64,000 nucleotides of DNA from Malacoraja senta (Eukaryota): positions 1,736,001-1,800,000 of the forward strand of contig CM075981.1 of NCBI GenBank assembly GCA_038087875.1, given 5' to 3'. Shown here piece after piece: positions 244 through 24,718 of the stretch. Each line of letters begins with the position of its first letter. Within the stretch, counting starts at the first letter, position 1. The notes under the pieces were generated by a model. The model searched no databases. It saw only the letters and a program-made list of their open reading frames with translations, and had not been told where the DNA came from. Made by a program: the position numbers and the translations under genes.

Positions 244-558
244 CTGCAGTGTGGGGAGAGACGTATGTAACAGGAGTTGTGGGAAGAGCGATCACAATCT
301 ATTGTCACTATGAAGCAGAGTACCGCTCACACACAAAATACTGGTGCCGTGTGCAGAATCGGCAATGTACAGATATGATGGAAACAAATGGGCAACACGG
401 ACGGAGTGGAAGAGTGTCAATCACAAATAACCCGGCACGAGGAATATTTACTTTGACTGTGGAGGATCTTCACTCTGGAGATACAGGATGGTACAGGTGT
501 GGAATTACAACATCTAACGGCCGTTCAATGTTAAACGTAGAACTCCAAGTATCTGACG
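244..558 (+). CDS. Ig V-set exon V1, CD300/CMRF35/pIgR-like
   Basis: Acceptor ctccaattcag|CT, donor GACG|gtacgt, 315 nt, phase 1-1. Translation AVWGETYVTGVVGRAITIYCHY..KYWCRVQNRQC..DTGWYRCG has the canonical B/F Cys pair plus the extra C-C' Cys pair of the CD300/pIgR family. Confidence 0.92.
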
Positions 559-758
559 GTACGTTTCTCAGCGATTGACTTGTCGTCTGCACTGAAAGGC
601 CTGATCTATGTTTTCTCCGGGAAGGGTCAGGGCAGCACCGATATCCCGAGGCTCCGCAGCAGTGCAGAGACCTGCGGGGAGCGAGCGGGGGTCGGGAAAC
701 CGCACTCATTTTGCTCTCACCCTGAGCGGGCTCTGCCCCACTGAGCGGCCACCCACTT

Positions 759-2725
759 AGAAACATAGAAACATAGAAAATAGGTGCAGGAGGAGGCCAT
801 TCGGCCTTTCGAGCCAGCACCGCCATTTGTTGCTATCATGGCTGATCGTCCCCAATCAATGACCTGTGCCAGCCTTCTCCCCATATCCCTTGATTCCACT
901 AGACCCTGGAGCTCTATCTGACTCTCTCTTAAATCCATCCAGTGATTTGGCCTCCACTGTCCTCGGTGGCAGGGAATGCCACAAATTCACAACTCTCTGG
1001 GTGAAAACGTTTTTTCTCACCTCAGTCTTAAATGGCCTCCCCTTTATTCTAAGTGTGGCCCCTGGTTCTGGACTCGCCCAACATTGGGAACATTTTTCCT
1101 GCATCTAGCTTGTCCAGTCCTTTTATAATGTTATGTGTTTCTATAAGACCCCCCTCAAACTTCTAAACTCCAGTGAATACAAGCCTAGTCTTTTCAATCT
1201 TTCCTCATAAGACAGTCCCGCCATCCCAGGGATCAATCTCGTGAACCTATGCTGCACTGCCTCAATCACAAGGATGTCCTTCCACAAATTAGGAGACCAA
1301 AACTGTACGCAATACTCCAGATGTGGTCTTTCCAGAGCCCTATACAACTGCAGAAGAACCTCTGTACTCCTATACTGAAATTCTCTTGTTATGAAGGCCA
1401 ACATTCCATTAGCTTTCTTCACTGCCTGCTGTACCTGCAAGCCAACTTTCAGTGACCGGTGTACAAGGACACCTAGGTCTCGCTGCGCCTCCCCCCTACC
1501 TAACCTAACCCCGTTTTGATAATAATCTGCCCCCTTGTTTTTGCCACCAAAGTGGATAACCTCACATTTATCTATATTATACTGCCACGCATCTGCCCAC
1601 TCACTCAACCTGGTCACCCTGCAACCTGCTAACATCCTCTTCATAGTTCACACTGCCATCCAGCTTTGTGTCATCCGCAAACTTGCTAGTGTTGCTCCTA
1701 ATTCCCTCTTCCAAATCATTAATATAAATGGTAAACAGTTGCGGCCCCAACACCGAGCCTAGCGGCACTCCATTCGCCACTGCCTGCCATTCTGAAAAGG
1801 ACCCGTTCACTCCTACTCTTTACTTCCTGTCTGCCAACCAATCTTCTATCCACGTCAACACCCTACCCCCAATACCATGCGCTCTAATTGTAGTCACCAG
1901 TCTCCCGGGCGGGTACTTATCAAAGGCTTTCTGAAAGTCTAGATACACTACATCCACTGGCTCCCCTTCATCCATTTTACTTGTCACATCCTCAAAAAAA
2001 TCCAGAAGATTACATAGATACATAGAAAATAGGTGCAGGAGTAGGCCATTCGGCCCTCCGAGCCTGCACCGCCATTCAATATGATCATGGCTGATCATCC
2101 AACTCAGTATCCCGTACCTGCCTTCTCTCCATACCCCCTGATCCCTTTAGCCACAAGGGCCACATCTAACTTCCTCTTAAATATAGCCAATGAACTGGCC
2201 TCAACTACCCTCTGTGGCAGAGAGTTCCAGAGATTCACCACTCTCTGTGTGAAAAAGTTTTTCCTCATCTCGGTCTTAAAGGATTTCCCCCTTATCCTTA
2301 AGCTGTGACCCCTTGTCCTGGACTTCCCCAACATCGGGAACAATCTTCCTGCATCTAGCCTGTCCAACCCCATAAGAATTTTGTACGTTTCTATAAGATC
2401 CCCTCTCAATCTCCTAAATTCTAGCGAGTATAAGCCAAGTCTATCCAGTCTTTCTTCATATGAAAGTCCTGACATCCCAGGAATCAGTCTGGTGAACCTT
2501 CTCTGCACTCCGTCTATGGCTATAATGTCCTTCCACTTGAAGTGTGTCGAGCATGATTTTCCTTTCATAAATCCATGCTGACTTGGACTAATCCTTTTAC
2601 TGCTATACAAATGCCCCATTATTACCTCTTTAATAATTGACACCAGCATCTTTCCCACCACCGAAGTCAGGCTAACTGGTCTGTAATTCCCCGTTTTCTC
2701 TCTCGCTCCTTTTTTGAAAAGTGGA
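759..2725 (-). mobile_element. 5'-truncated CR1 LINE (RT C-terminal part), interrupted by a second CR1
   Basis: (TTTCTATG)n tail at 759; RT fragments GVPLGSVLGP..FADDTK (1601-1810) and [11 protein letters not shown] (1141-1644). Confidence 0.9.
2013..2545 (-). mobile_element. CR1 3' fragment nested in the preceding CR1
   Basis: Has its own ctatgtatctatg tail. Host sequence rejoins across it as tcatgctcgac|taatcttctgg, matching the uninterrupted copy near 15135. Confidence 0.85.
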
Positions 2726-2879
2726 ATTTAACTTCTCTTTCACTTCACTTTTCACTTCAAGTGGAATGCTCAGCACATTTCCCTTCCTCTGAACTGTATG
2801 AAATGTCACCCTGTCAGAAGTTTGCATTCCGACTCAAAATAATAATCCGACAGATCAGTGAGAACAAGTGTTGCTCGCG

Positions 2880-3960
2880 GACTGAATACCCCGAGAGTTT
2901 TTAAAAAATCAGTCCCCAGAGCTCAATAGAGTGCGTTCAGTCCTCCCGGGGTAGGGCATCCCTCTTCCCGCCCCCATCTCAGGGACCAGTCATTCCCTCC
3001 CAAACCCCGCGCTCTCTCTCTCTCCCTCTGCCCCGTCAATGCGCCCCCATCCCCAGCAGCCACTGTCCACCCACCGCCCGGCAGTCAGCCAACCTCTCCA
3101 CCCGGACATTTCCCCGATGTTAAGCAGAATAAACTCATCTTTCACCACATCAGCCGTCGCACACAACACATAATCATCCAACATTATCGCCACCTGCAAC
3201 GGGATCCCACTACTAGACATATATTTCCATCTCCACCGCTTTCTGCTTTCCGAAGAGACCGTTCCTTCCGTAACTCCCTGGTCAACGTCCACCCTCCCCC
3301 CCCCCAAAAAAAAACATCCCCTCCCCAAGTACCTTCCCCGACAACTGCAGGAGATAGATCACCTGTCTCGATACCTCCTTCCTCTATTCCGTCCAAGGTC
3401 TCCAACAATCTTTTCGGGTGAGGATTGACTTGCATCTCCTCCAAGCTCACCTACTACATCCGCTGTTGCAGGTGTGAACTACTATATATCGGCTAGACCA
3501 AGCGCAGACTCGTCGATCGTTTCGCTGACTAACTCCGCTCAGTCTGCTCCTGGACCTCCTCCACTATCCAACGTAAATAGGAGGAAAAGCACCTGGGCAA
3601 CTTACAACCCATCGTTTGAATATTGACTTCTCTAACTTCAAGGAACCCTTGCTTTACTCCTGTCCCCATCCCGCCACCATCCTGGCTCTCCAGTTAGTTG
3701 CACAGTCAAACTGATTTTCTTTTACTTATTGTATGCCTCGTTGTCACCTTCCCTTCAGCTCACAATGATCCATTGTCCATTTTATTTTCACCTTTGATCA
3801 CTTGTTTTCACACATTACCTGTCCATTTATCTTCTGTCTCCCTGTCCCATGATTCTCAGGCTGAAGGTGGGTCTCGACCCGAAACGTCACCCATTCCTTC
3901 TTTCGAGAGATGCTGCCTGCTCCGTTGCGTTACTCCAGCATTTTGTGTCTATCTTAAAGG
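2880..3960 (+). mobile_element. Degraded Penelope-like element 3' part (GIY-YIG region plus terminal repeat)
   Basis: Remnant LTYYIRCCRCELLYIG-x-TKRRL-x-DRFA and the terminal repeat gggtctcgacccgaaacgtcacc. Confidence 0.8.
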
Positions 3961-4589
3961 GATCGTAATTCGTTTTCCACAGCAGAGATGGTTAAGTGTG
4001 TGTAGACATGTAATGGGGGAAATGGAACTCGGTGCATTGTGGTGATGGATCTGAAATCACACTTGAATATCTACACAATGTTCGTAGTTTAACCACTGTT
4101 GACACATGGTCGAATTGCATCCTGACGATAAATGAAAGGCTTAAAATAGCGAATAAATTTGAAGCAGATACTGCAAGACACCTGGACCGAAGGCGAGAGG
4201 TTCCAACGTCATCTGTAAGTTAATTCTACACTTTTAAAATGTGTTTACCAAGGAGGTGGAAGTCAGGATTGTGGACTCATTGTGTCAGTTCAAACATTCC
4301 CTGCATTTGTCCGGCTCAACTCTGTCGCAAACCCAACAATTCCCCGGAGTCTGAGACTGAACCACTGTCCTCGCTCTATCCACCCACCCCAACTCTCTCT
4401 CCATCATCTCTCCAATCCGCGGCCCAGTCGTGCTGAATTGTCCAGGGCGAGCCGGGGTCATTGAGAATAAAACCTGTCCCAGATGAGCAGCGGGACATTG
4501 GGCTCACAATTCAGTTTAGTTTATTGTCACGAGTACCGAGGTACAGTGAATCTGGCGGTGTGTGTTTTCACGCTAGTAGCGTTCTCCAG

Positions 4590-4910
4590 CAAGGGACCCG
4601 CTTTATTGTAACCCGTCCGTATTCTGTCCTCAGTCAGGGCGTTGTAAAGACAGTGGCTGCGGTGAATTTCTAAACACGGGTCCGGCCCTGTGTCGGTTGA
4701 GAGATGAATGCTGGCAGCGCCGACACTGAAATAGCAAAGTGGGGTATTTCTGTAGGGTGAGAAGCCGGGAACCGCCTGGGATTGTTGAAAGGCAGCTCCT
4801 GCAACACTGCCGCGCTCCCTCAGTACCGCACTGCGATCCCAGCCCAGTTTCTGCGCAGGGATCTGGAGTGGGTAGTGAACCCTAATTCTACTGACCAGGG
4901 GACATAACAC
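4590..4910 (-). mobile_element. Old Deu-domain SINE remnant (AmnSINE1/SacSINE1-like); its duplicate end is at 1-60
   Basis: Minus strand cccactccaga..cagtgcggtactgagggagcgcggcagtg..ctatttc..ctcaaccgacac resembles the DeuSINE central domain as I recall it; not aligned computationally. Confidence 0.55.
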
Positions 4911-5084
4911 TGACACAACTTGTACAATAACAGCACTGCCTGCACTTCAGACTGGAGACATTGGCCGTGAAGCAATATGACACATCATGGAACGATTATG
5001 TTTTTCATGTACTCTTCAAAATGTATATATTTCCATTAAACAGTTCATTTGCTCTCCATCTGAAAGTTTTCCCCTCCCTTTCAG

Positions 5085-5399
5085 CTGCAGTGTGGGGAGA
5101 GAGGAATTTAACAGGAGTTGTAGGAAGAGCCATCACAATCGATTGTCACTATGCAGCAGAGTACCGCTCACAGGCTAAATACTGGTGCCGTAGGCAGAGT
5201 CGCCAATGTACAGATATGGTGGAAACAAATGGGCAACACGGACGGAGTGGAAGAGTGTCAATCACCGATATACCGGCACTAAGAATATTTACTATGACTG
5301 TGGAAGATCTTCACTCTGGAGATACAGGATGGTACAGCTGTGGAATCACAGCATCTGCCGACAATTCAATGTTTAACGTATATCTCCAAGTATCTGACC
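5085..5399 (+). CDS. Ig V-set exon V2, tandem paralogue of V1
   Basis: Acceptor ctccctttcag|CT, donor GACC|gtacgt, 315 nt, phase 1-1; four Cys conserved (DCHY, KYWC, RQC, WYSC). Confidence 0.92.
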
Positions 5400-5719
5400 G
5401 TACGTTTCGCAGCGATTGATTCATGTCTCCACTGAAAAGCCTGATCCATGTTTTCTCCGGGAAGGGTCAGGGCAGCACCGATATCTCGAGGCTCCGCAGC
5501 AGTGCAGAGGCCTGCGGGGAGCGGGCGAGGGTCGGGAAACCCCACTCATGTTTGCTCTCACCCAGTGCGGGCTCTGTCCCACTGAGCGGCCACCCACTTC
5601 AAGACACTCAACACATTTCCCTGCCTCTGAATTGGATGAAATATCACCCTGTCAGAGGTTTGCATTCCGACTCAAACTAATAATCCGACAGATCAGTGAG
5701 AAACAAGTGTTGCTCGCCG

Positions 5720-6835
5720 TCTGAATACCCGGAGAATCATAAACAGGGAATCAGTCCCCAGAGCTCCACAGACTGCGTTCAGTCCTCCCGGGGCAGGCCA
5801 GCCCGCTTCCCGCCCCCACCTCAGGGATCAGTCACCCCCTCCCCACCCCGCGCACTCTCTCTCTCTCCCTCTGCCCAGTAAATGCGCCCCCACTGCCAGC
5901 AGCCATTGTCTACCCACCGCCCGGCAGCCAGCCAGCCTCTCCTCCCGGACATTTCCCCGTTCGTAAGCAGAATAAACTCATCTTTCGCCCCATCAGCCGT
6001 CGCACACAGCATATATTCCTCCGACATTTGCGCCACCTACAACGGGATGCCACAACTAGTCACATCTTTCCATCTCCATCGCTTTTTGCGTTCCCTCCGC
6101 AACTCCCTGGTCAACTCGTCCTCCCCCCCCTCCCCCCGTCCCCAGGTACCTTCCCCTACAATTGCAGGAGATGCAACACCAGTCACTATATATCCCCCCT
6201 TTACTCCGTCCATGGGCCTCAACAGTCTTTTCGGGTGAGGCAGAGGTTCACTTGCATCTCCTCTAACCTCATCTACTCTATCCGCTGTTCCAGATGTGAA
6301 CAAGCGGATATAGTAGCTGAACAACTCCGCTCAGTCTGCCTCGGCCTACGCTACATCCCGAGTGCTAAACACTTTTATTCCCCCTCCCATTCCCAAACTG
6401 ATCTTTCCGTCCTGGACCTCCTCCAGTGTCAGAGTGAGGCCAAAGGCAAATTGGAAAAACAGCGCCTCATATTTCGCTTGGGCAGCTTACAACCCAGCGG
6501 TTTGAATATTGACATCTTTAACTTCAAGTAACCCTTGCTTTACTCCTTTCCATCCCGCCCCCATCCGAAACCTCCAATTAGATTCACCTGATAATATTTT
6601 ACTGATGGTATGCCTCGTTGTCACCTTCCCTTCAGCTGACAATTATTCATTCTACATTTCCCTTTAACATTGTCACCTTTGATCACTTGTTTTAACATCT
6701 TCCATTTCTCTTCTGTCACCCAGAACATGACTGTCAGGCTGGAGAAGGGTCTCGATCCGAAACTTCACCCACTCCTTCTCTCGAGAGATGCTGCCTGCTC
6801 CGCTGAGTTCCTCCAGCATTTTGTGTCTCTCTTAA
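5720..6835 (+). mobile_element. Penelope-like element 3' part with GIY-YIG endonuclease remnant
   Basis: ORF 6028-6531: RQRFTCISSNLIYSIRCSRC..KHFYSPSHS..LIFRLGSLQPSGLNID. Confidence 0.85.
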
Positions 6836-7753
6836 AGCGATCGTAATTAGTTTTCGCGATTAAATTACAAGGCATTGAATTGTGTTTTTGGCACGCTGGT
6901 CTTCATCAGTGAGAACATTCAGAATATAATTTGAGATAATATGCTTCAGACGTGCAGATGTTCAGTCCACACTTTGGGAATTGTGTTCAGCTTCAGTCAC
7001 TCAGCTCCAAGAAAAGTTGAGATGGACAGCGTGCAGAAAGGTTTTAGGGCGACGTTGCCTGGACAGGATGGGATTGACGCAGGGAGCGATTGGACAAACT
7101 CAGACTTCATTCCTTAGTGTGGAAATGATTGAGAGAGGAACTTATAGAAATGTAACAATCACGAGAAGCATGTTCATTTTCCCACGATGTGTGGAATCAA
7201 AAAGTGGAGGACAGAGGTAATGGGAACTATTTAAGGTGCAATTGACCGTAATGGCATGTTTTGTCCAGATGAGTGGCCGAAGCTGAACACAATTCGCACA
7301 AGTTCGAACTCAACCACATATGTACAACTGAAACATAACATCCAACATATGTTCTGAGGGACAACATTTTCCACACATTGGGTAATATGTACATGGAACC
7401 TGCTGCCAGGGGAACTTGTTGAGGCAGTTAGAATAGCAGCGTTTAAAATAAATTTTGGATATTTGCGTAGATTGGGATCATTGCGAGTATTAAATGAGAA
7501 ACGCGGACATATGGAAATGTCATAGAAAGACATGTTGGTCGGCATTAATGAGCTGTTGTGATGGGCATCTTTCGGTTCTCTATAACTCTAACCTTCTTCG
7601 GTTTCTGCGCTTCGCACACTCCCAGAGATGTAGATGAGCCGGTGAGGTATCAACCGGACGGTTCGGGCTGAGATAAAGTGCTGCTGAGATTTAGTGAGTG
7701 TTTGGTTTTTAACAATTCATACAGGTGACTGAATATTTGCTCCATTCCCACAG

Positions 7754-8074
7754 AACCCATGTCTGCTCCTGTGCTCAGTTATCTGTCAGCAGCAAATGCC
7801 TCACGTCTTGGAGGCTCAGTGTCAGTGTCCTGTGAGTCTCTCCGTGGATCCCTTCCCATCCATTACACATGGTTTGAGAAGGACGAGCATTGGGTTTCTA
7901 CGATCTTGAAAGGCAATCAACTGGATCTGAGTTGTGAAATCCTCAGAGGTGAACACCTTCGATATTACTGCACAGCCGCAAATAATCGTGGGACAAAATC
8001 CAGTGAAATACTCACGGTGAAAGTCTTCAAAGGAGCAGGAACGTGCAGTTATGTGACAGAAATGAACAATGCAG
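7754..8074 (+). CDS. Ig C2/I-type exon C2a, FCRL/PECAM-like
   Basis: Acceptor ccattcccacag|AA, donor GCAG|gtgagt, 321 nt, phase 1-1. PMSAPVL..GGSVSVSCESLRGSLPIHYTWF..YYCTAANN resembles the C-x4-GS-x-PI-x-Y-x-W pattern of FCRL/PECAM C2 domains. Confidence 0.88.
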
Positions 8075-9326
8075 GTGAGTGTCCCTCTCGTGAGCCTGAA
8101 CCTGCTGCTATTCACCTTGTGGTGATGTTCATGGATTTCTTGTTATTTGCAGACGGCATCATTGCAGCCACCGTGAGCTCATGGTGTAAAATGCGAGAGT
8201 TTGTTTGGGGGACTGGCAAATAATTGCCCGTAGCTTCCACCATTGAGGTGTTGAGCAATTTCAGCAAAGGAGAGAAAGACATGCACTTGTCACAAAGGGT
8301 TGAGTGCACTCCATCAAATGTCTGCCTTCTGCCTTAAAAATGCCGCTTGGCTGCCGCTTAAGGTCTCACAGTCACTTTGAGACATTGAAAGCAACCAAAT
8401 GCATTCTGTTTGGATCCGCCATCATTTACAATCAAGGATGTACAATTTCATGATCATGTTCATGATTTTATCTGTTAATTTGTGTTAAACTCCAGTAATA
8501 TCACTAAATTAAATTGTAATCTACTTGGCCGTCACTCCATCAAGTATAACCCTTACTTTTGTCAAAGAGAATTTTGAAATGAACTCCCAGTAGGCGTGGA
8601 GACGTTCAGATTGGAAGTCCAGAATAGAGTGTGAATGGTTTACATCAGAGACACCAAGCTTATACAATGCCAGCGTTTCTTAAACTATTTCAGTGCCATT
8701 CACCCTTGAGTCTTTATTACAAGATTTAATTCACCCTCCACAAAATATTCTTATGTTTTTTTGGTTATTATCATCTTATTTTCACGTGTGCATAATTTTA
8801 TATATAATTTATTTTGTCACATGAGCAAAAAACATGAATTAGCTCATTCACCCCAAAATAATTTCATTCGCCCTTGGGTAAACCATTCATCAGTTTAAGA
8901 AGCACTGGCCGAGGCTACAATTTCGCCGAACACTTGTGTTTGGTCTGTCATGACCCAGAGTCGTACTTGATAGACACCCCGTTGATGCAGAGCAGCAGCA
9001 CTTTGCACCATCTGCACGATGCACTGCAGCAACTCACCAAGACTCCCAAGACATTACCTTCCAATTGCAACAGGCTCCGTGTTCAATGCATCATTCTTCA
9101 CCATTCACACCCACATTGGCTGGGAAGCGCTTTGGAACGACCTGTGCAGATGGTGAGGGACGGTGTACAGTATCTGTCCCTCATCGCAATCTAGGTGGAA
9201 TTCAACTGAGTTAAGAAAATGATTGGGCGGACTCCCCTGTATACATTGATGTATACAATAATGTATATGTTTGTGAAAGGCTAATTTTGCTCTTGAATCT
9301 ATGAAAGAATTTTCCTTCAGTTTCAG

Positions 9327-9638
9327 GTGCACTGTGGGCAGAGAGCGAAGTACGAGGGGTTGCGGGAAGAGCGATCTCAATCGATTGTCACTATGCAGCA
9401 GTGTACCGCTCACACACAAAATACTGGTGCCCTGGGACAAATCGCCAGTGTACACATATAGTGGAAACAAATGGGAAACAAGGACAGAGCGGAAGAGTGT
9501 CAATCACAGATAACCCGGCACGAGGAATATTTACTGTGACTGTGGAGGATCTTCACTCTGGAGATACAGGATGGTACCGATGTGGAATTATTACACCTGG
9601 CGAACCAACATTTAAAGTACATCTCCAAGTATCTGAAG
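9327..9638 (+). CDS. Ig V-set exon V3, CD300/pIgR-like
   Basis: Acceptor ccttcagtttcag|GT, donor GAAG|gtagat, 312 nt, phase 1-1. Open frame ALWAESEVRGVAGRAISIDCHY..KYWCPGTNRQC..GWYRCG. Confidence 0.9.
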
Positions 9639-10834
9639 GTAGATTTCTCAGTGAGTGACTTCATGTCTCGACTTTGGCATCTGCATAAAACATATGTTGG
9701 GTCACATATGGGAGTCTGGTGCACAGTTCTGGTCGCCGCTTTATAAAACAAAAGATGTGAAAGGTTTGGAGAGGTTACAGAAAAATGTCACCGGGATATT
9801 TAGTTGTAGGTTACAAATGCAACATGGAAATGGATCCTTCGGCTCACCGAGTCCACACCGACTAGCGATCACCGGTCACACTGGTTCTATGTTATTCCAC
9901 TTTCCCATTCGCTCCCTACACACAATTCTACAAAACCGCCATTCTCACACCTCATTAGTGCAACATTATCACTATCAACAATTTTATACAAGGAAATTAA
10001 AAAGTTGTTGATAATGATATATTGCACTAACGAAGTGTTTGAATGTTGGTATTGTAGAATAGTGGCAGAGTTTCAGATTAAAAGAAGATTAACTGCAGAT
10101 GCTGGAAATATAAAACAAAGATAGATGGTGCTGCTGTGTATTGGTACAGTGGCAGACATGGTAGTTCTGGCAGCTGGGAGGATGGAGAGACACAGAGATG
10201 TTCAAATCTGATAAATTGTGAGGAGAAGGAGCAGAGAAGACTTACAAGGATGTTGTGATGACTTGAGGGCCTGACACACAGGGAGGGATTGAGCAGATTA
10301 GGACTTCATTTCTTGGAGCGCAGGAAGATGAGGGATGATCTCATGGCAGGTAAAACATCATGCGAGGAATAGATCGAGTTAATACACAGAGTCTTTTGCT
10401 CAGAGTAGGGGAATCGAGAACCGGAGGACATGGTTTTAATATGAGGGGGGAATGATTTAACAGGAACCTGGGGAGTAACGTATTTTACACAAAGGTTGGT
10501 AGGCACATGAAACGAACTGCAGACAGAAGTAGTTATGGCAGGTACTATCGTAACATTTAATAAAATATTGGACAGGTACATGAATATGATATGTTTAGTG
10601 GGTTAAGGGCCAAGAAAGGGCAGGTGGAACTCGTGTAGATTGGGCGTGTTGGTCAGCGCAGGCAAGTTAGACCGAAGGGCCTGTTTCTATGCTGTATGAC
10701 TATGATTCTATGTAGATGGATGGGTCAGATTCCAACCTGGCGGCTCTGGCTAAGGTACAGAGATGGTGGATATTGGCGAGTGGTTGATTTTCAGATGTTC
10801 ACCCAGTGTCTGACAGTTTGCTCCTTACCCACAG

Positions 10835-11155
10835 AACTCGTGTCTGTTCCTGTGCTTGGATTCCTGTCACCAGTCAATGACTCCTGTCTCGGGGGCTCAG
10901 TGACAGTGTCCTGTGAGGCGGTCAGTGGATCACCGCCCATTAGCTACAGCTGGTATGAAAAGACCCTATCTGTGGATTCAAAGATCTCAGACCAAAATGC
11001 CTTGGATCTACATTGTCAATCCTTCAAACACCAGCACCATCAATATTACTGCACAGCCTCCAATAATGATGGATCAAAATCCAGTGAAATGGTCAACGTG
11101 TCCATCTCCAGCAGTGACGTGCCCTGTAGTTTTCTAGTGAAAATCAACGGCACTG
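10835..11155 (+). CDS. Ig C2/I-type exon C2b, paralogue of C2a
   Basis: Acceptor ctccttacccacag|AA, donor ACTG|gtaagt, 321 nt, phase 1-1. LVSVPVL..GGSVTVSCEAVSGSPPISYSWY..YYCTASNN. Confidence 0.88.
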
Positions 11156-12445: not shown

Positions 12446-12494
12446 GACTTGAATATTCTTGTGAAACTTCGAAAAGAACCAATTATTCTTCAAG
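12446..12494 (+). CDS. 49-nt stalk mini-exon (GLEYSCETSKRTNYSSR)
   Basis: Acceptor tttttatttccttgttccaacag|GA, donor CAAG|gtaaac. Its phase 1-2 exactly bridges phase-1 C2b to the phase-2 TM exon. Not in the ORF track. Confidence 0.8.
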
Positions 12495-12724
12495 GTAAAC
12501 TACTCTGTTTCCAATGAAAGGTGCCATGTACTAATTGCTGGTGTTTTGATTGGGATTGCTTCAATTTGCAGAACGTTGTGTCTTCCGTTTACTGGCATTA
12601 AAGGCCCTTGGGAGTATTGATCTGAATGCACATTGACACAGCCAGTGGAACCACAGCCTCACAATGCCAAGAACCTGAACTTAGGCGCCGTCTATGTGTG
12701 TTCTGCAAATTTCGCCTTTCATTG

Positions 12725-13770: not shown

Positions 13771-14489
13771 TTGTGTAAATGTGGTTGATGGTCAGCGCAG
13801 ACCTGAAGGGCCAAATGGCCTATTTCCATACTGCGTCTCTCTATGGATCCTATGAGCCCAAATATCAGGAAACATAAGCAATGCTTTTGCATGTGTTTCA
13901 AGACTGACACTGAAAGATAAATTTATCTCTTAAACATTCTTCTAAACAAGAATTTAGAAGAATGAGGGGGGACCTCATTGAGACATACATAACAGTGAAA
14001 GGCTTGGATAGAGTGAATGTGGAGAGGGTGTTTCCACCAGTGGGAGAGTCTAGAATTAGAGGAAGTAGCCTCAGAATTAGATGCTCTTTTTAGGAAGGAG
14101 ATGAGAAATGTCTTCAGTTAAAGGGTGGTGAATCTGTGGAATAATTTGCCACAGAATGATGTGGAGGCCAAGTCAGTGGATACATTTATGGCAGAGATAG
14201 ATAGATTCTTCTTTAGTACGGGTGTTGGAGGTTATGAGGAAAAGGCAGGAAATGGGGTTAGGTGGGAGAGAAAAATCAGTCATGATTGTATGGCGGAGTA
14301 GACTTGATGGGCCGATTGGCCTAATTCTGCTCCTATTCCTTATGACCTTATGACCGAATTCTATAATAATATACGTATATAATTTGCAAACCAGATATTA
14401 GCTAATTAATCAGAAGGGAAATTGCTTACATCTCATTGTGTTGTGTATATGCTTGGGTTATAAGAACAGGATCCTCCATTTGTTGCCAT

Positions 14490-16412
14490 TCATATGCACT
14501 ACGGGCTGAAAAGATGAAGTACGAGGGGAAGCTGGCCAGGAATATAAATAAGGATAGTAAAAGCTTCTTTAGAAAATGTTAAGGGAAAAAGAGTAGCAAA
14601 ATTTGATGTGGGTCCCTTGAAACCAGACATGGGTGAAATTATTATGGGGAACAAGGAAATGACAGAGGAGTTGAACAGGTACTATGGATCTGGCGTCACT
14701 AAGGAAGACACAAACAATCTCCCAGAAGTACTGGAGGACAGAGGATCAAAGGGGGTAGAGGAACTGAAAGAAATTATCATTAGGCGAGAAATAGTATTGG
14801 GTGGGCTAATGGGACTGAAGGATGATAAATCCCCTGGGCCTGATGGTCTGCATACCAGGGTCCTCAGGGAGGTGGCTCTAGAAATAGTGGACGCATTGGT
14901 GATCATTTTCGAATGTTCAATAGATTCAGGATCAGTTCCTGTGGATTGGATGATAGCTAATGTTATCCCACTTTTCAAGAAAGGAGCGAGCGGGAAAACG
15001 GGGAATTACCGACCAGTTAGCCTGACTTTGGTGGTGGGAAAGATGTTGGAGTCAATCATTAAAGAGGTAATAATGGGGCATTTGGATAGCAGTAAAATGA
15101 TTAGTCCAAGTCAGCATGGATTTATGAAAGGAAAATCACGCTTGACTAATCTTCTGGAATGGTTTGAGGATGTGACAAGTAAAATGGATGAAGGGCAGCC
15201 AGTGGATGTGTAGTGTCACTCGACTTTCAGAAAGCCTTTGATAGGTCTCGCATGGGAGACTGGTGACTAAAATTAGAGCACATGGTACTGGTAGGGTGTT
15301 GACGTGGATAGAAAATTGATTGGCAGACACGAATCAAAGCGTAGGAGTGAACGGGTCCTTTTCAGAATGGCATGCAGTGGCGAATGGAGTGCCGCAAGGC
15401 TCGGTGTTGGGGCCGCAACTGTTTACCATATATATTAATGATTTGGAAGAGGGAATTAGGAGCAACGCTAGCAAGTTTGCGGATGACACAAAGCTGGGTG
15501 GCAGTGTGAACTGTGAAGAGGATGTTAGGAGGTTGCAGGGTGACCTGGACAGGTTGAGTGTGTGGGCAGATGCGTGGCAGATGCAGTATAATATAGATAA
15601 ATGTGAGGTTATCCACTTTGGTGGCAAAAAAAAGGGGCAGATTATTATCTCAATGGGGTTAGGTTAGGTAAGGGGGAGGAACAGCGAGACCTGTGTGTCC
15701 TTGTACACCGGTTACTGAAAGTTGGCGTCCAGGTACAGCAGGCAGTGAAGAAAGCTAACAAGAGGATTTCAGTACAGGAGTAGAGTGGTTCTTCTGCAGT
15801 TGTATAGGGCTCTGTTAAGACCACATCTGGAGTATTGTGTACAGTTTTGGTCTCCTAATTTGCGAAAGGACATCCTTGTGATTGAGGCAGTCCAGCGTAG
15901 GTTCACGAGATTGATCCCTGGGATGGCGGGACTGTCTTATGAGGAAAGATTGAAAAGACTAGGCTTGTATTCACTGGAGTTTAGAAGGATGAGGGGGTAT
16001 CTTATAGAAACATATAAAATGCTTTTTATTTTTTAAGACTGGACAAGCTAGATGCAGGTAAAATGTTCCCAATGTTGGGCGAGTCCAGAACCAGGGGCCA
16101 CAGTCTTAGAATAAAGCGGAGGCCATTTAAGACTGAGGTGAGAAAAAACGTTTTCACCCAGTGAGTTGTGAATTTGTGGAATTTCCTGCACAGAGGACAG
16201 TGGAGGCCAAATCACTGGATGGATTTAAGAGAGAGTTAGATAGAGCTCTAGGGCTAGTGGAACCAAGGGATATGGGGAGAAGGCAGGCATGGGTTATTGA
16301 GTGGGGGCGTTCAGCCATGATCACAATGAATGGCGGTGCAATGATAGGGCCGAATGGCCTCCTCCTGCACCTATTTTCTATGTTTCTATGTTTCCATGTT
16401 TCTATGTTTCTA
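14490..16412 (+). mobile_element. 5'-truncated, frameshifted CR1 LINE
   Basis: [43 protein letters not shown] and [11 protein letters not shown] across ORFs 14608-16036; ctatgtttc tail. Confidence 0.9.
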
Positions 16413-17019
16413 TAGGGCGTTCCCTGCGGTATTCACCATGACTTCTCCATCACTAACCTCACCCCATGGTGTGAGATGAGTATAGTTGCCAAACACAACT
16501 ACTGCTGCTTTGCCTTGCAGTGACTGCTCTAGTGTGGTACTGATAGGAAAATGCATAGTGAATTATGGGCTAAATCACCAACTTGCGGAGTTGGTCAAAG
16601 TCTCAATGTCAGGCATTCCAACAGCAGGAAGTGTCTCCACCTAGAACGTGACCCTGTGTGGTAGGCACGTTAAGTCACACTGCTGACCTTGAGATGGTCA
16701 TGGTGAGCTGCCTTCTGAAGATGTTCCATATTGCAGACAGCTCTAAACGAACAGTCAATGTCCAAACCAATGTTGGTGGATGTGGAGATGGAGTTGTGAA
16801 TGGCATTGGGGTGAGATTTGTGGAATGAAGTGCATTGTTTTCTCTTTGGCATGGTGTTCTCTCCACCGAGGTTGGAACAGGGTTGTAGAACCGCGCTCAC
16901 AACGTGGTGGTTTCAAGGATAGCTGCAAATATTTGGGTAAATCCCTCAGATACCACACCACTGCAGTACTGAGGGAGGGCAGCGTGCTAGCTGTAAGATA
17001 TGAAAACTCCAATAACAGT

Positions 17020-17315
17020 GGCATGGTGGGACAGCGATATAGTTGCTGCCTTATTGCCCCAGAGACTTATGTTCGATCCTGACTCCTGTTGCTGTCTGTT
17101 CGGAGTTTGTTCCTTCTCTCAGAGACCACGTGGGTGTTCTCCAGGTGTTCCAGTTTTCTCCCACATTCCAAAGACGTGCAGGTTTGTAGGTTAATTGGCT
17201 TCTGTAAATTGTCTCTAGTGTGTAGGGTAGATCTAATATATGGTGATTACTGGTCGACGCAAATTTGGTGGGCCGAAAGTCCTGTTTACATGCTGTATCT
17301 CTAAAATAAATTAAA
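17020..17315 (+). mobile_element. V-SINE; its (TAAAC)n tail resumes at 18203-18250
   Basis: tRNA-like head with gttcgatcc B box, central ctccaggtgttccagttttctcccacattccaaagacg, and 3' gggccgaa..cctgttt..gctgtatctctaaa. Confidence 0.8.
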
Positions 17316-18202
17316 TTAACAACAATACAATTTATTTGTCTTTTTTGTCTTTTGGACAAATTTTTCATTTGGACCCCGTTGAGGTCCAAACGAAATGTCG
17401 TTTCTGCAGCCATACATTACAAAACGAAGAAGACCCGAGACACAACACAATTTACACATACATCCATCACAGCGCTGTGATGGAAGGCAAAAAAACGTAT
17501 CTCTCCACTGCACTCCCCCCCCCCCCCGCCCACCATGTCAGAGTCAAAGTCAAAGCCCCCGGCGGGCGATTATCCCGCGGCCATTAAAGCCACGCCGGTT
17601 AATGCAAGGTCGCGCACCGGGTCTTGGTGTTAGAGCCCCGGCGCGCGCTCGCAAAGTCCGGCGGCCATTCCAAGCCGTGCGGGGCGACGATGTAAAGCCC
17701 CGCTCCAGGTGCTCTTCAACCCCGCAACTCGGGCGGGAGAAGTCGCCGCTGCGGAAGCCCCGAAAAGCGGTCTCCCACCAGGGGACCCGCGGGCTTCCGG
17801 TGTTGCCGTCCGCCAGACCCGCGGTTGTAGCCTCCGAATCTCCGGGGGTCGGGTAGCAGCAGCGATTGTCTCCACCACAGCTCCACCCGCTCCGGACTCG
17901 GCCAGCCCCGCGACGGTGAGTAGTCCGCAGCTCCGCAACTGGAGCCCCAGGTCGTTCCTGCTGGAGGCCGCTCCACGTTGCCCAGCCCCAACGACAACGG
18001 AGACCCGACAAAGAAAAGGTCGGGTCTCCCGTGCAGGGGAAAGATTTTAAAGTCCCCCCCCACCCCCACCCCCACCCTCCCACACACATACCCCGACAAA
18101 AAAAAACAAAAAAAAATACATAAAAACGAGACAAAAATAATAAAGAGACAGACGGACTGCAGAGGCCGCTGCAAACGAGTCGCGCCGCCCACCGTTGGAT
18201 GA
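17316..18202 (-). mobile_element. GC-rich non-coding retro-element with LINE-type 3' stem-loop
   Basis: 3' end tttggacc..ggtccaaa hairpin plus gacaaataaa, related to 61340-61700; no recognisable protein. Confidence 0.5.
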
Positions 18203-18552
18203 TAAACTAAACTAAACTAAACCAAACTCAGCTGAACTAAACTAAAGTAATCATTGCTATTAATGTGTAACAGTTCCCATGCATTGTTCGTGAAGGAGGA
18301 GGGAGGGTTCCTTAATGTTTGGGCGCAATTGCTCTTGAACCAGTTTCATGATCGTTGGTCAATGTCACCTTACTGTGAGCAGATTAGCTGCTGCGTTACT
18401 CACCGAAACAGACTCTACACCTCATCTCCTTTGCTGCATACTTCAAAAAAATCATGAAAGGTGCCATATAAATTGTTGACTTTTGTTCTTTACTGAAGGC
18501 CAAGAATCAATGATGAGCCATATCTCACCCTTCCCTATTCTCTGTCCGACAG

Positions 18553-18641
18553 GATCACTTACATAGTTGCGTCTGGTGTCGCTGTGCTTCTCCTGATTCT
18601 CATCATTGCCTTCTTTTGGTACCAAAAGCGTAAAACCAAGG
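18553..18641 (+). CDS. Transmembrane exon (R-ITYIVASGVAVLLLILIIAFFWY-QKRKTK)
   Basis: Long polypyrimidine acceptor cccttccctattctctgtccgacag|G, donor AAGG|gtgagt. About 23 uncharged hydrophobic residues followed by a basic stop-transfer motif. Confidence 0.88.
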
Positions 18642-19369
18642 GTGAGTTTCTGATTTCCCTTAAATAATTTCACAATACTTGTCTCAGTTCCCTCCAGAAT
18701 GTCAAGAGATTTAATTCTGATCTAATCAACAAATGCCCTGCATTAAAGTAATACAGTGTTGGAGGAAGCATGGATGATCAATAATGCTATCACGTTTGAT
18801 GCTATAATGGTGACTCGGTGACAAAAACTATTCTTTTAACATCATTGTACTTAAACTGTCTGAGTGTGAAATGGCAGAGATGCGTGAGAACTAAGAGGCT
18901 AGGTAGAAGTAAGATTTACATCGATACTCTCATCCTCTCAGCTGTTAGAATATGCTTCGTGTGATTAGCTGTTGTATTTCAAATCAGATTAAGTCGTGTT
19001 TATTGTCACATGCACAAGCATGATGAAGTAGTTACAATGAAGATCACACCTGCAGCCTCACAGGGACATAAACAACGTACAACATACCTGCATCACACAG
19101 AGGGCGGTGGGTATATGACAGGAGCTGCCAGAGGAGGTAGTTGAGGCAGGGTAGGTCTAGCCTGGACAGGTAATCCAAGATGTGAACACCCATGAACTTG
19201 AAGCTGCCAACTATCTCCACCGCCGATGAAAATGTGAAAGTTCACTGAGCTGTTCCTCAGTCAGAGAGCATTAGTGGAAAGTAAAACAGTAAACATTTCA
19301 CATCCAAGACCCATTACAACAGGGAAAGAGGGAAAAGAGGGGGAACCTCATTGAAAGATCAAATAGTGA

Positions 19370-22300
19370 AAGGCCTAGATACAGTAGATGTAGAATGGAT
19401 GTAGAAGGGACTCAAATAGAGAATGCTATTAGACAGTGTGTGAGGCAGGAGGCAGAGAAGGAAAGCACTCAGACCCAACATGTAGGGGGGGAAGAAGAAA
19501 ACAATAATAAAAAGAGAATAAGAGGTGGTGGGGTTCTTAAATGGGTGAGCAGAGAAACAGAGGGGTGTCAAATGCGGGCGGAAGCAATAGGTAGCAAGGT
19601 GAAAAGTAAAAGTGGCAGGCAGACAAATCCAGGGCAAAAATCAAAAAGAGCCACATTTCAACATAATTGTATAAGGGGTAAGAGCGTTGTAAAAACAAGC
19701 CTGAAGACTTTGTGTCTCAATGCAAGGAGCATTCGTAATAAGGTGGATGAGTTGAACATGCAGATAGCAATTAATGATTATGATATAGTTGGGATCACGG
19801 AGACATGACTCCAGGGTGACCAAGGCTGGGAGCTGAACATCCAGGGATATTCCATATTCAGGAGGGATAGAGAGAAAGGAAAAGGAGGTGGGGTAGTGTT
19901 GCTGGTTAGAGAGGAGATTAACGCAGTGGAAAGGAAGGACATTAGCTTGGAGGATGTGGAATCGGTATGGGTAGAGCTGCGAAACACTAAGGGGCAGAAA
20001 ACGCTGGTGGGTGTTGTGTACAGGCCACCTAGCAGTAGTAGTGAAGTTGGGGATGGCATCAAACAGGAAATTAGAAATGCGTGCAACAAAGGCAAAACAG
20101 TTATAATGGGGGACTTCAATCTACATATAGATTGGGTGAATCAAATTGGCAGGGGTGCTGAGGAAGAGGATTTCTTGGAATGTATGAGGGATAGTTATCT
20201 AAACCAACATGTAGAGGAACCAACGAGAGAGCAGGCTATTCTAGACTTGGTATTGAGTAATGAGGAAGGGTTAGTTAGCAGACTTGTTGTGCGTGCCCCC
20301 TTGGGCAAGAGTGACCATAATATGGTTGAGTTCTTCATTAGGATGGAGAGTGACATTGTTAATTCAGAAACAACGGTTCTGAACTTAAAGAAAGGTAACT
20401 TTGAGGGTATGAGACGTGAATTGGCCAAGATTGACTGGCAATTAGTTCTAAAAGGGTTGACGGTGGATATGCAATGGAAGGCATTTAAAGACCGCATGGA
20501 TGAACTACAAAAATTGTTCATCCCAGTTTGGCAAAAGAATAAATCAGGGAAGGTAGTGCATCCGTGGATAACAAGGGAAATCAGGGATAGTATCAAAGCA
20601 AAAGATGATGCGTACAAATTAGCCAGAAAAAGCAGCATACCAGAGGACTGGGAGAAATTCAGAGACCAGCAGAGGAGGACAAAGGGCTTAATTAGGAAAG
20701 GGAAAATAGATTATGAAAGGAAACTGGCAGGGAACATAAAAACTGACTGCAAAAGTTTTTGTAGATATGTGAAGAGAAAGAGATTAGTTAAAACAAATGT
20801 AGGTCCCTTGCAGTCAGAAACAGGTGAATTGATGATGGGGAACAAGGATATGGCGGACCAATTGAATAACTACTTTGGTTCCGTCTTCACTAAGGAAGAC
20901 ATAAATAATCTGCCGGAAATAGCAGGGGGCCGCGGGTCAAAGGAGATGGAGGAACTGAGTGAAATCCAGGTTAGTCGGGAAGTGGTGTTGGGTAAATTGA
21001 ATGGACTAAAGGCCGATAAATCACCAGGGCCAGATAGGCTGCATCCCAGAGTACTTAAGGAAGTAGCTCCAGAAATAGTGGATGCATTAGTGCTAATTTT
21101 TCAAAACTCTTTAGATTCTGGAGTAGTTCCTGAGGATTGGAGGGTAGCAAACGTAACCCCACTTTTTAAGAAGGGAGGGAGAGAGAAAACGGGGAATTAC
21201 AGACCAGTTAGTCTAACATCGGTAGTGGGGAAACTGCTAGAGTCAGTTATTAAAGATGGGATAGCAGCACATTTGGAAAGTGGTGAAATCATTGGACAAA
21301 GTCAGCATGGATTTACGAAAGGTAAATCGTGTCTGACGAATCTTATAGAATTTTTCGAGGATGTAACTAGTAGAGTGGATAGGGGAGAACCAGTGGATGT
21401 GTTGTATCTGGACTTTCAGAAGGCTTTCGACAAGGTACCACATAAGAGATTAGGATACAAACTTAAATCACACGGTATTGGGGGTTCAGTATTGATGTGG
21501 ATAGAGAACTGGCTGGCAAACAGGAAGCAAAGAGTAGGAGTAAACGGGTCCTTTTCACAATGGCAAGCAGTGACTAGTGGGGTACCGCAAGACTCAGTGC
21601 TGGGACCCCAGCTATTTACAATTTATATTAATGATCTGGACGAGGGAATTGAAAGCAACATCTCCAGGTTTGCGGATGACACTAAGCTGGGGGGGCAGTG
21701 TTAGCTGTGAGGAGGATGCCAGGAGACTGCAAGGTGACTTGGATAGGCTGGGTGAGTGGGCAAATGTTTGGCAGATGCAGTATAATGTGGATAAATGTGA
21801 GGTTATCCACTTTGGTGGCAAAAACGGGAAGGCAGACTATTATCTAAATGGTGGCCGATTAGGAAATGGGGAGATGCAGCGAGACCTGGGTGTCATGGTA
21901 CACCAGTCATTGAAAGTAGTCATGCAGGTGCAGCAGGCAGTGAAGAAAGCGAATGGTATGTTGGCCTTCATAGCAAGAGGATTTGAGTATAGGAGCAGGG
22001 AGGTTCTACTGCAGTTGTACAGGGTCTTGGTGAGACCACACCTGGAGTATTGCGTACAGTTTTGGTCTCCAAATCTGAGGAAGGACATTATAGCCATAGA
22101 GGAAGTGCAGAGAAGGTTCACCAGACTGATTCCTGGGATGTCAGGACTTTCATATGAAGAAAGACTGGATAGACTTGGCTTATACTCGCTAGAATTTAGG
22201 AGATTGAGAGGGGATCTTATAGAAACGTACAAAATTCTTATGGGGTTGGCCAGGCTAGATGCAGGAAGATTGTTCCCGATGTTGGGGAAGCCCAGGACAA

Positions 22301-22605
22301 GGGGTCACAGCTCAAGGATAAGGGGGAAATCCTTTAAGACCGAGATGAGGAAAAACTTTTTCACACAGAGAGTGGTGAATCTCTGGAACTCTCTGCCACA
22401 GAGGGTAGTTGAGGCCAGTTCATTGGCTATATTTAAGAGGGAGTTAGATGTGGCCCTTGTGGCTAAGGGGATCAGGGGCTATGGAGAGAAGGCAGGTACG
22501 GGATACTGAGTTGGATGATCAGCCATGATCATATTGAATGGCGGTGCAGGCTCGAAGGGCCGAATGGCCTACTCCTGCACCTATTTTCTATGTTTCTGTG
22601 TTTCT
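19370..22605 (+). mobile_element. CR1 LINE with nearly complete ORF2 (APE endonuclease plus RT), two lesions
   Basis: Frame from 19395 (LNARSIRNK..GITET) broken by TGA at 19806-19808 (expected TGG); continues 19896-21704 ([24 protein letters not shown]); G-run frameshift near 21690-21696; ends in 21577-22509 plus tail. Confidence 0.93.
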
Positions 22606-22939
22606 ATTAGTGGGATAGTCTAGGACCAGAGATCATAACTTCAGAATTAAAGGACATTCCTTTATGATGGACATGAGGAATAATTTAGTTCGTCAGAGGG
22701 TGATGAATCTGTGGAATTCTTTGCCACAGAAGGCTGTGGAGCCCGTCAATAGATATTTTAAGGCATAGATAGATTCTTGATTCGTACAGGTGCCCTGGAT
22801 TATGGAGGGAAGGCAGGAGAAAGAGGTTAGGAGGGAGAGATAGATCAGCCATGGTTAAATGGCGGAGTAGATGGATGGGCTGCATAGCTTAATTCTACTC
22901 TTATCACTCATGAACTTATGAAAACCTTTTTAAGCAGAT

Positions 22940-23340
22940 TAGGTTAGGGTGATGGACACAAAATGCTGGAGTAACTGAGCGAAACAAGCAGCATCTCTGG
23001 AGAGAAGTAATGTGTGATGTTTTAGGTCGAAACTCTTTTTCAGACTGATGTCAGGCAAGTGGCAGTACTGAGATAAAGTATAGTCGGACACAGTAAGACT
23101 GGTCAGAGAACTTCGAAGGGGGAGTGGATGGAGGGAGGGAAAGCAAGGGCTACTTGAAGTTAGAGAAGTCAATGTTCATACCGCTGGGGTGTAACCAGCC
23201 CAAGGAAATATGAGGTGCTGTTTCTCCAATTTGTGCTGGGCCTCACTCTGAGAATAGATGAGGCCCAGGACAGAATGGTTAGTGTGGGAATGGGAGTAGG
23301 AGTTAAAGTGTTGATCAACCGGGAGATCAGGTAGGTTTAG
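22940..23340 (-). mobile_element. Penelope-like 3' fragment
   Basis: Reverse complement of cttgggctggttacaccccagcggtatgaacattgacttctctaacttcaag (LQPSGMNIDFSNFK) and the terminal repeat. Confidence 0.75.
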
Positions 23341-23977
23341 GCAGCTTCAGTGTGAGATGGGGTAGAGTACAGGGAATATGATCCATTCTGAACATTACGT
23401 ACAGTAACCAAAACAACAGGGCAGATTCTTACTCCATACGTGCAAATATACTGCAGTGCCTTTGGGGTTCTCCTAAATATAAGGTCGTGGCAACAACACG
23501 TAGATGTTTGTGTGTTGGAAGGAACTGCAGATGGTGGTTTACACTGAAGGTAAACATAAAATGCTCTAGAAATTAGCGGGTCAGGGGCGACATTTTGCCA
23601 GCAGCGCAACAGAAAATCATCAAATATAGTAGTTCTCAGCTTAGCTGGATAAAAGAAACAGATTGAGTATGTGTGTATGTGTATATATACACACTGAACT
23701 TATTTTTCTCTCCCGTTATGTACTATGTCTACATATTCTGTTGTGCTGCAGCAAGTAAGATTGTCATTGTTCTATCTGGGACATATGACAATAAAACACT
23801 CTATACTCTTGAAAAGGAACAGTTGACGTTTCAAGGCGAGACCCTTCTTCAGACTGAGAGTCAGGTGAAAGGGAAACAAGAGATATAGAAGGTACATGGA
23901 ACAAATGAATGAAATATATGAATGAATGATGTTTAAACCTGTTCATAATATGGCTCTATCGACAACATATTTTCCAG

Positions 23978-24024
23978 AATCCAAGTGCAATACATCACAC
24001 GGTGAAGACAACAATGAAATCCAG
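23978..24024 (+). CDS. Cytoplasmic mini-exon (ESKCNTSHGEDNNEIQ)
   Basis: Acceptor catattttccag|AA, donor CCAG|gtaaaa, 47 nt. Phase 1-0 bridges the TM exon to the last exon. Confidence 0.78.
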
Positions 24025-24442
24025 GTAAAAATGTGAAATATAAATTCTCTGAGTGATGAAAAATATATAATATTGAATTATCTGTGTTTACACAGGCCAT
24101 TTAGCAACACCAGTCCACTCCAGTTAAGAGAACCAGCACAGAAACAGGCCCTTTGGCCCACCGAGTCCACGCCGACCGGTGACCCACGCACACAAAAACT
24201 ATCCTACGCACACTAGGGACAATTTGCAATTATGCCAAACCAATTAACCTACAAACATGTTGTAGGCACTGTCAGGCAACAACTCTACCGCTGCTCCACC
24301 ATGCTGCGCTATCTTTGTGTTGTAAACAGCAGCAATGGCCTGTTCTGTACACTGAACAGTTTGAGACCTACTTTGTAATAGACATCTGTTGAGGACCTTT
24401 CAAATCTATTAGGTTGTAAAATTGGATTTTGTTATATTTTAG

Positions 24443-24718
24443 GAAATGGCAGTGTTGGAAGGGAACCACGTTGATGCAAATCTGCAGCAAATTGGAAACA
24501 ACAGGGCAGCTGACCATTTGGATAACAATGAAGGTGGAATCACGTATGCAGTGGTGAAATGTCAAAGGAAGTCGAGATCAAGGCACCCTGAGACTCACAA
24601 CACTGTTCTCTACGCAGATGTTAATTTTCATCGCAACTGCCCAAAGGGCAATCGGAAACCCCACTCTACTAGGGCTCCAGAGAACTCTGAAACAATTTAT
24701 GCCTCTGTTGTTTCTTAG
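24443..24718 (+). CDS. Terminal cytoplasmic exon with ITIMs ITYAVV and VLYADV and ITSM TIYASV
   Basis: Acceptor ttttgttatattttag|GAA, phase 0, stop TAG at 24716-24718. Motifs match the I/V/L/SxYxxL/V and TxYxxV/I consensuses. Confidence 0.88.
   Translation, partial: EMAVLEGNHVDANLQQIGNNRAADHLDNNEGGITYAVVKCQRKSRSRHPETHNTVLYADVNFHRNCPKGNRKPHSTRAPENSETIYASVVS

Follow-up and report, generated by a model that had tools for sequence, protein, structure and literature searches.

The 64,000-nucleotide (nt) stretch analysed here (the window; positions 1,736,001 to 1,800,000 of contig CM075981.1, forward strand, Malacoraja senta assembly GCA_038087875.1) carries a gene for a membrane receptor built of immunoglobulin (Ig) domains. 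Nine exons on the plus strand, joined between positions 244 and 24718, are open over 680 codons and encode two V domains, a C2 domain, a third V domain and a second C2 domain, followed by a stalk, a transmembrane (TM) span and a tail with two immunoreceptor tyrosine-based inhibitory motifs (ITIMs) and one immunoreceptor tyrosine-based switch motif (ITSM). A first-pass annotation had proposed this V-V-C2-V-C2-stalk-TM-ITIM-ITIM-ITSM order from nine phase-compatible exons, three of them outside the track of open reading frames (ORFs), and both statements hold. All splice dinucleotides are canonical (17/17), with an AG acceptor on each exon (9/9) and a GT donor on all but the last, and the stalk, TM and cyt1 exons are absent from the list of window ORFs of at least 60 amino acids (aa). 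The limits given in that annotation are exact, 244 being the acceptor side of V1 and 24718 the stop codon.

Table 1. Exons of the receptor gene and related features, in window positions or, for Amblyraja radiata CM021389.1, in positions of locus L001.
Feature	Sequence	Position	Strand	Phase	Description
V1 exon	window	244-558	+	1-1	pIgR/CD300-type V; four cysteines on the B, C, C' and F strands
V2 exon	window	5085-5399	+	1-1	paralogue of V1 at 78% aa
C2a exon	window	7754-8074	+	1-1	FCRL5/CD22-like C2
V3 exon	window	9327-9638	+	1-1	membrane-proximal V type
C2b exon	window	10835-11155	+	1-1	second C2 type, 47% aa to C2a
Stalk exon	window	12446-12494	+	1 to 2	GLEYSCETSKRTNYSS; 49 nt; tblastn with MDIR3 and Leucoraja relatives
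TM exon	window	18553-18641	+	2 to 1	ITYIVASGVAVLLLILIIAFFWY plus QKRKTK; hydropathy scan
cyt1 exon	window	23978-24024	+	1 to 0	ESKCNTSHGEDNNEIQ; 47 nt
Final exon	window	24443-24718	+	0	ITIM ITYAVV, ITIM VLYADV, ITSM TIYASV, stop
V1-V2 intron stretch	window	3974-4437	+		88.5% nt to an Amblyraja intron, starting 60 nt past a leader exon
V3-type pseudo-exon	window	31513-31803	+		acceptor CAT, not CAG; 3' end lost or replaced
MDIR5-type terminal exon	window	32029-32076	+		RRDESEAGHSTHELQ plus stop; good acceptor; about 225 nt past the pseudo-exon
Unit 1	L001	leader 10004; 3' exons 39314-46896			ITIM-type 3' end
Gene B	L001	leader 52705			V, C2a, V3, C2b, different stalk, arginine TM, short tail (MDIR5 type)
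Unit 3	L001	leader 73717			half V exon, then ITIM-type stalk, TM, cyt1, final

A tblastn search of the window with the domains of the first-pass annotation placed V-type exons at 249, 5090, 9332 and 31513, C2-type exons at 7759 and 10840, and a single tail ORF at 24446-24718. The five Ig exons, of 315, 315, 321, 312 and 321 nt, are bounded by strong polypyrimidine-AG acceptors and GT donors; each is divisible by three and in phase 1-1, and the four exons that follow continue the phase chain to the stop codon (Table 1). The TM exon was located by hydropathy scan, the stalk and cyt1 exons by tblastn with relatives. A hydrophobic stretch at 12528, VLIAGVLIGIASICRTLCL, was considered as the TM exon and rejected: it is intronic, lies just past the stalk donor and matches no relative. 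Because exon-level tblastn against family proteins reaches E values of 1e-40 to 1e-58, a chance origin of the predicted exon matches is excluded. No leader exon was found in the window by tblastn with 41 family leader peptides or by blastn with three Amblyraja leader regions; the blastn matches comprised a short interspersed repeat that adjoins leaders and the leader-intron homology between V1 and V2. Because the leader exon lies outside the window, upstream of it, the gene is truncated at its 5' end by the window edge.

All three V domains are recognised by the Pfam V-set profile with E values of about 1e-13 (7.6e-14 for V1). Among solved structures, the best match of V1 is pIgR (whole-chain E 5.6e-54; single domain D1, independent E 2e-14), followed by CD300 members with E values of about 1e-18 to 1e-16 (best 2e-18), NKp44, TLT-1, TREM2 and FcmuR. 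In the alignment of V1 to pIgR D1, the canonical cysteines of the B and F strands and the extra cysteines of the C and C' strands all match up. V3 is the most conserved of the Ig exons (95.8% nt identity to Amblyraja) and is placed in a V3-type clade in the V domain tree. In the same tree, V2 clusters with domain 2 of the Amblyraja protein P0167 and domain 3 of the Leucoraja protein P0152, and the counterpart of V1 is domain 2 of Amblyraja P0164, V1 also grouping with domains of Leucoraja P0206. V2 carries one N-glycosylation sequon.

C2a and C2b fall under the Pfam profiles Ig_2, Ig_3 and Ig_C17orf99, and their best match among solved structures is FCRL5, with E values, summed across the FCRL5 repeats, of 4e-38 and 1e-43, followed by FCRL4 and CD22. 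The C2 domain tree places C2a in a C2a-type clade with support of 100/99. One N-glycosylation sequon is present in C2a and three in C2b. We performed a profile-free exhaustive search with C2a, in which the top matches were chondrichthyan proteins where this C2 type alternates with pIgR-type V domains. The matches from outside the chondrichthyans were multi-C2 proteins only, at 25-36% identity; where the name was looked up it was sialoadhesin-like, CD22-like, hemicentin-like or FCRL5, and the ten that were scanned have at most one V domain each, of the Siglec type and N-terminal.

The stalk carries a cysteine and the TM span is free of charged residues, as seen both in the hydropathy scan and in the sequence. 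Towards the C-terminus conservation is high: the TM exon is 87% identical to that of MDIR3 (see below) in aa, the cyt1 exon is 95.7% identical to three Amblyraja copies in nt, and the final exon is 79% identical to the MDIR3 tail in aa. Of the three tail motifs, ITYAVV and VLYADV fit the ITIM consensus and TIYASV fits the ITSM consensus. Their tyrosines are spaced by 22 and 29 residues, and the motif starts (-59, -37 and -8) are the same in seven other skate relatives, MDIR3 among them. Two further skate proteins, P0002 and P0182, keep only the last two motifs, and the last motif reads SIYASV in most skate relatives. The first-pass annotation had described the V domains as CD300/pIgR-type with an extra C-C' pair, the C2 domains as FCRL-like and the tail as ITIM/ITSM inhibitory; the structure matches with their four aligned cysteines, the FCRL5/CD22-like relatives of the C2 domains and the tail motifs agree with each of these descriptions.

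The gene belongs to a family of cartilaginous fish receptors. Protein P0002 of Rhinoraja longicauda has a V-C2-V-C2-V-C2-stalk-TM layout with a tail near-identical to that of the window gene. A search with it retrieved 87 proteins; apart from two, they belong to skates, rays, sawfish, many sharks and the chimaera Callorhinchus. Over 20 chondrichthyan genomes have annotated relatives, and most of the 87 bear the automatic names "polymeric immunoglobulin receptor-like" or "Fc receptor-like protein 5". Two proteins of the clearnose skate Rostroraja eglanteria carry curated names in UniRef: P0166 (701 aa) is Modular domain immune-type receptor 3 (MDIR3) and P0186 is Modular domain immune-type receptor 5 (MDIR5). 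MDIR3 consists of a leader, V, V, C2, V, C2, a stalk, a TM without charged residues and a tail in which three tyrosine motifs follow. The spliced product of the window gene is collinear with it, residues 1-680 aligning to 20-701 of P0166 with 76.6% identity over 684 columns, which climbs to 86-88% in V3 and the TM. Among the predicted skate "pIgR-like" proteins, identity is highest to P0167 of Amblyraja radiata, at 79.7%.

Trees of skate domains resolve four types (a distal V group, V3-type, C2a-type and C2b-type), and every domain of the window gene falls into one of them. Family members contain from 2 to 11 domains; V-C2-V-C2 is the commonest layout, and NCBI isoforms differ by whole V-C2 units. 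The original description of the MDIRs reportedly recognised four Ig-domain subfamilies with one to six domains per receptor, and is said to have placed ITIMs in MDIR2 and MDIR3 and to have seen a distant similarity to Fc receptor homologues as well. Collinearity with an MDIR, recurring domain subfamilies, an ITIM tail behind an uncharged TM and membership of a clustered multigene family are thus all found together in the window gene. We conclude, with a probability of roughly 0.87, that it is an MDIR3-type modular domain immune-type receptor of skate, of which only the leader exon lies outside the window.

The receptor can be compared with several known systems. Its domain order is identical to that of MDIR3 and the tail motifs stand at the same positions; the two differ in species, in the subclade of the distal V domains and in the last motif, SIYASV in MDIR3 and TIYASV here. 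MDIR5 and an Amblyraja gene of its type (gene B, Table 1) share the same four domain types, but have an arginine in the TM span and a short tail without motifs, whereas the window gene has an uncharged span and ITIM/ITSM motifs. The ectodomains of pIgR and CD300 contain V domains only. pIgR and CD300/CMRF35 are the closest solved relatives of the V domains of the window gene; unlike pIgR, with its V-only ectodomain and C-C' disulfide, the window receptor interleaves two C2 domains with its V domains and has an ITIM/ITSM tail in place of pIgR's. CD300/CMRF35-like receptors carry a single V domain with an extra disulfide on a stalk, and end in a TM with an ITIM tail or in a charged TM; the window receptor agrees with them in V type and in its ITIM tail, but five Ig domains including C2 precede the membrane. 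FCRL5, FCRL4 and CD22 share the C2 domain type and a similar inhibitory tail logic, but FCRL ectodomains, joined to an ITIM and/or ITAM-like tail, are built of C2 domains only, whereas the window receptor has three pIgR-type V domains; identity to FCRL, about 30% (27-34%), indicates distant kinship and not orthology. The carp protein SITR, compared here by its description (PMC3031540), also joins a CD300-like V domain to a second Ig domain of another set, and its authors compared its V domain with the MDIRs (PMC3031540); it differs in being soluble, with two domains and no signalling motif.

V1 and V2 are duplicates of one another, flanks included. Positions 4847-5599 match 1-758 at 90% nt identity, and a second duplicated segment, 2753-3977, has its match in 5595-6855 at 81%; between these segments of the first copy, the interval 759-2752 coincides with minus-strand reverse-transcriptase-like ORFs. 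Just after the end of the first duplicated copy lies the intron stretch related to an Amblyraja leader intron (Table 1); here is the junction left by the duplication or fusion behind the pair. Neither tblastn with leader peptides nor blastn with the Amblyraja leader regions detected a leader exon between V1 and V2. The pair would have arisen by duplication of intron 1, the V exon and part of intron 2, or by a deletion that fused neighbouring paralogues and would have taken out the leader of the second; V1 and V2 would belong to one transcription unit under either origin. Amblyraja and Leucoraja proteins contain separate counterparts of V1 and of V2, so the pair predates these genera.

The Amblyraja radiata locus that encodes P0167 (L001) is a tandem cluster with further family genes on its flanks. 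At least four tandem units lie within 95 kb, 3' ends of the ITIM type and of the arginine-TM type are both present, and the locus shows the same exon set and spacing as the window gene. In unit 3 the V exon is broken mid-exon and joined to the intron that normally follows C2b. The V2-C2a-V3 block of the window gene, counted with its introns, shares about 89% identity with gene B, and from C2b on the gene is at least as close to the ITIM-type units. The NCBI model of P0167 extends over 75 kb (10001-84969 of L001), links the V exon at 14.1 kb directly with that at 59.8 kb, and skips a full C2b, stalk, TM, cyt1 and final exon set (39.3-46.9 kb) as well as the leaders of gene B and unit 3. Three tandem genes have probably been merged in this model, and on account of its length and of the skipped 3' exon set and leaders it was set aside as independent support for the V-V order.

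Several points weigh against assigning the gene to the MDIR3 type and reading it as a functional receptor. The V tree puts the distal V domains of the gene and those of MDIR3 into separate subclades, so that the gene need not be a one-to-one orthologue of MDIR3. At least one Amblyraja gene model with the V-V order, P0167, looks chimeric, and the MDIR3 cDNA is therefore stronger support than any predicted protein. Splicing of the nine exons is predicted from splice-site logic and collinearity with that cDNA. Pairwise ratios of nonsynonymous to synonymous substitution (dN/dS) against the Amblyraja exons, all from small counts, are about 1.0-1.2 for V1, 0.4-0.9 for the remaining Ig exons, with V2 at 0.58, and 0.78 and 1.12 in two comparisons of the tail exon. 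A fast-evolving immune receptor would give such values and so would relaxed constraint, the counts being too small to decide. Finally, no report of a function or ligand of the MDIRs, or of phosphatase recruitment by them, was found in the literature searched. On the side of the functional reading, two runs, X1 and X2, contain most sampled words of the final exon and its 3' flank (0.95-0.98) versus about 0.52 in an intron-rich 6 kb; these shares are weakly suggestive of transcription.

The first-pass annotation had taken the gene for a previously uncharacterised, lineage-specific hybrid receptor whose interleaving of V and C2 domains is a new architecture. Part of this agrees with our results. 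In the searches made here the interleaved design was met in chondrichthyans only, in line with the annotation's proposal of a cartilaginous fish receptor; relatives of the C2 domains elsewhere are runs of C2 with at most one Siglec-type V, and relatives of the V domains elsewhere have no Pfam family that is specific to this C2 type. The labels in databases are mostly "pIgR-like", "FCRL5" or "uncharacterized", and the open literature barely mentions MDIRs. The search for a described family with such an architecture nevertheless found one: the cDNA of clearnose skate MDIR3 has the same order and tail as the window gene, and the MDIRs have been in print since 2006 (Cannon et al., Immunogenetics 58:362, PMID 16738934, as cited in PMC3031540). 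The claim of novelty thus fails, and a new architecture is extremely unlikely; the architecture is that of MDIR3, and the window gene is one more copy of it.

A different question is whether V1 and V2 are both part of the mature product. One of them might be skipped, giving a main form V-C2-V-C2 with the ITIM tail, in which case V1 would be a duplicated exon or what is left of a paralogue further upstream, with the five-domain form minor or absent. Both exons are in phase 1-1, so the frame survives the loss of either; the resulting layout is the commonest in the family, where isoforms differ by V-C2 units; the leader-intron-like sequence between V1 and V2 is what a fusion of two genes would leave; and the dN/dS of V1 is about 1. 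However, V1 is intact, with canonical splice sites and all four cysteines, the intron between the two V exons yielded no leader exon, the MDIR3 cDNA itself contains two tandem V domains of the same type, and V1 is kept across skate genera (Amblyraja P0164 domain 2 and the Leucoraja P0206 domains). We therefore consider skipping as the main form unlikely. The same dN/dS near 1, for V1 and for one of the tail-exon comparisons, could also be that of an unexpressed or decaying copy in the cluster, a pseudogene still without a stop codon, as could the decay of neighbouring family exons (31513-31803), the large insertions of long interspersed nuclear elements (LINEs) in the introns and the position of leader and promoter outside the window. 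Against decay, the 680 codons are open and the splice dinucleotides canonical throughout despite about 10% nt divergence from Amblyraja, the structural cysteines, the tryptophans and the three tail tyrosines are all kept, and the final exon is almost wholly contained in two runs from which about half of the intron-rich stretch is missing; a pseudogene is very unlikely.

The product of the MDIR3-type gene is predicted to be a type I membrane glycoprotein with five Ig domains and, by analogy, is most likely an ITIM/ITSM inhibitory receptor, with a mode of action comparable to that of ITIM receptors such as CD300a or FCRL. The distal V domains would bind a ligand, and upon its engagement the receptor would cluster with activating receptors. 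Src-family kinases would then phosphorylate the tail tyrosines, which would recruit the tandem-SH2 phosphatases SHP-1 and SHP-2, while the ITSM might also take SAP-like adaptors; the recruited phosphatases would damp signalling. Clustering, phosphorylation, SHP-1/SHP-2 recruitment and inhibition are modelled on the established behaviour of ITIM/ITSM receptors, and we infer expression, ligand binding and phosphatase recruitment for the window gene. Binding of Ig or lipid by the receptor, which the first-pass annotation had suggested, is speculation. The phase 1-1 Ig exons would allow duplication, fusion and exon skipping to reshuffle the modules. Paralogues in the cluster that combine an arginine TM with near-identical ectodomain exons fit a paired system of inhibitory and non-inhibitory receptors.

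The discovery value of the gene is small, its architecture having been published from skate cDNA in 2006 according to the citing literature. The MDIR family is near-invisible in the open literature, and because databases label its members inconsistently (pIgR-like, FCRL5, titin-like, uncharacterized) it is easy to rediscover. A 2014 survey reported that sharks have no pIgR or FcRL homologues (PMC4016189). At the level of domain homology the predicted domains of the window gene contradict this statement, the V domains matching pIgR D1 and the C2 domains FCRL5, and the MDIRs are therefore candidate immunoglobulin sensors of cartilaginous fish. That MDIRs are actually the chondrichthyan Fc or polymeric-Ig receptors, for IgM, IgW or IgNAR, or a relic of an ancestral receptor joining the V type of pIgR, FcmuR and CD300 with the C2 type of FCRL and FcR, is decidedly improbable; if true, either would contradict the same survey. 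The locus also illustrates clearly, at the genomic level, how Ig exons in phase 1-1 recombine, together with tandem paralogues whose ends are inhibitory or of the arginine-TM type.

Beyond the main gene, family members in the window comprise a V3-type pseudo-exon and an MDIR5-type tail exon at 31.5-32.1 kb (Table 1); the tail exon looks intact and has an intact counterpart in Amblyraja. An MDIR5-type TM exon, with arginine in the span, was not found in the window. The two exons appear to be the remnant of a neighbouring non-ITIM paralogue, which looks collapsed by deletion. Within the intron between stalk and TM of the main gene, an open stretch, GVPCGIHHDFSITNLTPWCEMSIVAKHNY (16395-16502, plus strand), is 61% identical to the C-terminal segment of the Rhinoraja protein P0168, with an in-frame stop codon just upstream. 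Similar stretches lie between the stalk and TM exons of Amblyraja ITIM-type units (42957-43046 and 80663-80749 of L001), and this stretch may represent either an alternative exon or an element conserved within the intron. In the same intron, before the TM exon, 17400-18200 is GC-rich with overlapping long ORFs on both strands (up to 194 aa); it has no matches to family proteins and could be a CpG-rich repeat or the remnant of an element.

The window is rich in LINE fragments. One reverse-transcriptase family, CR1-like from the appearance of its ORFs, is present in several copies in the introns and downstream of the gene: 759-2752 (minus strand), 14608-16415 (plus), 19896-22509 (plus) and 54937-56844 (minus). 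The copy at 19896-22509 has open segments of 602 and 310 aa and may be young. A different LINE lies at 42117-45909 on the minus strand, in an AT-rich block with a GC content of about 0.30; it contains two long intact ORFs, one endonuclease-like (530 aa) and one reverse-transcriptase-like (720 aa), and is possibly recently active. A short interspersed repeat of about 100 nt occurs in more than 15 copies on both strands of the window, among them 3857-3955, 6735-6833, 30214-30314, 33360-33449, 41290-41411, 60794-60891 and 63748-63846, and it flanks MDIR leader exons in Amblyraja too, at 84-96% identity.

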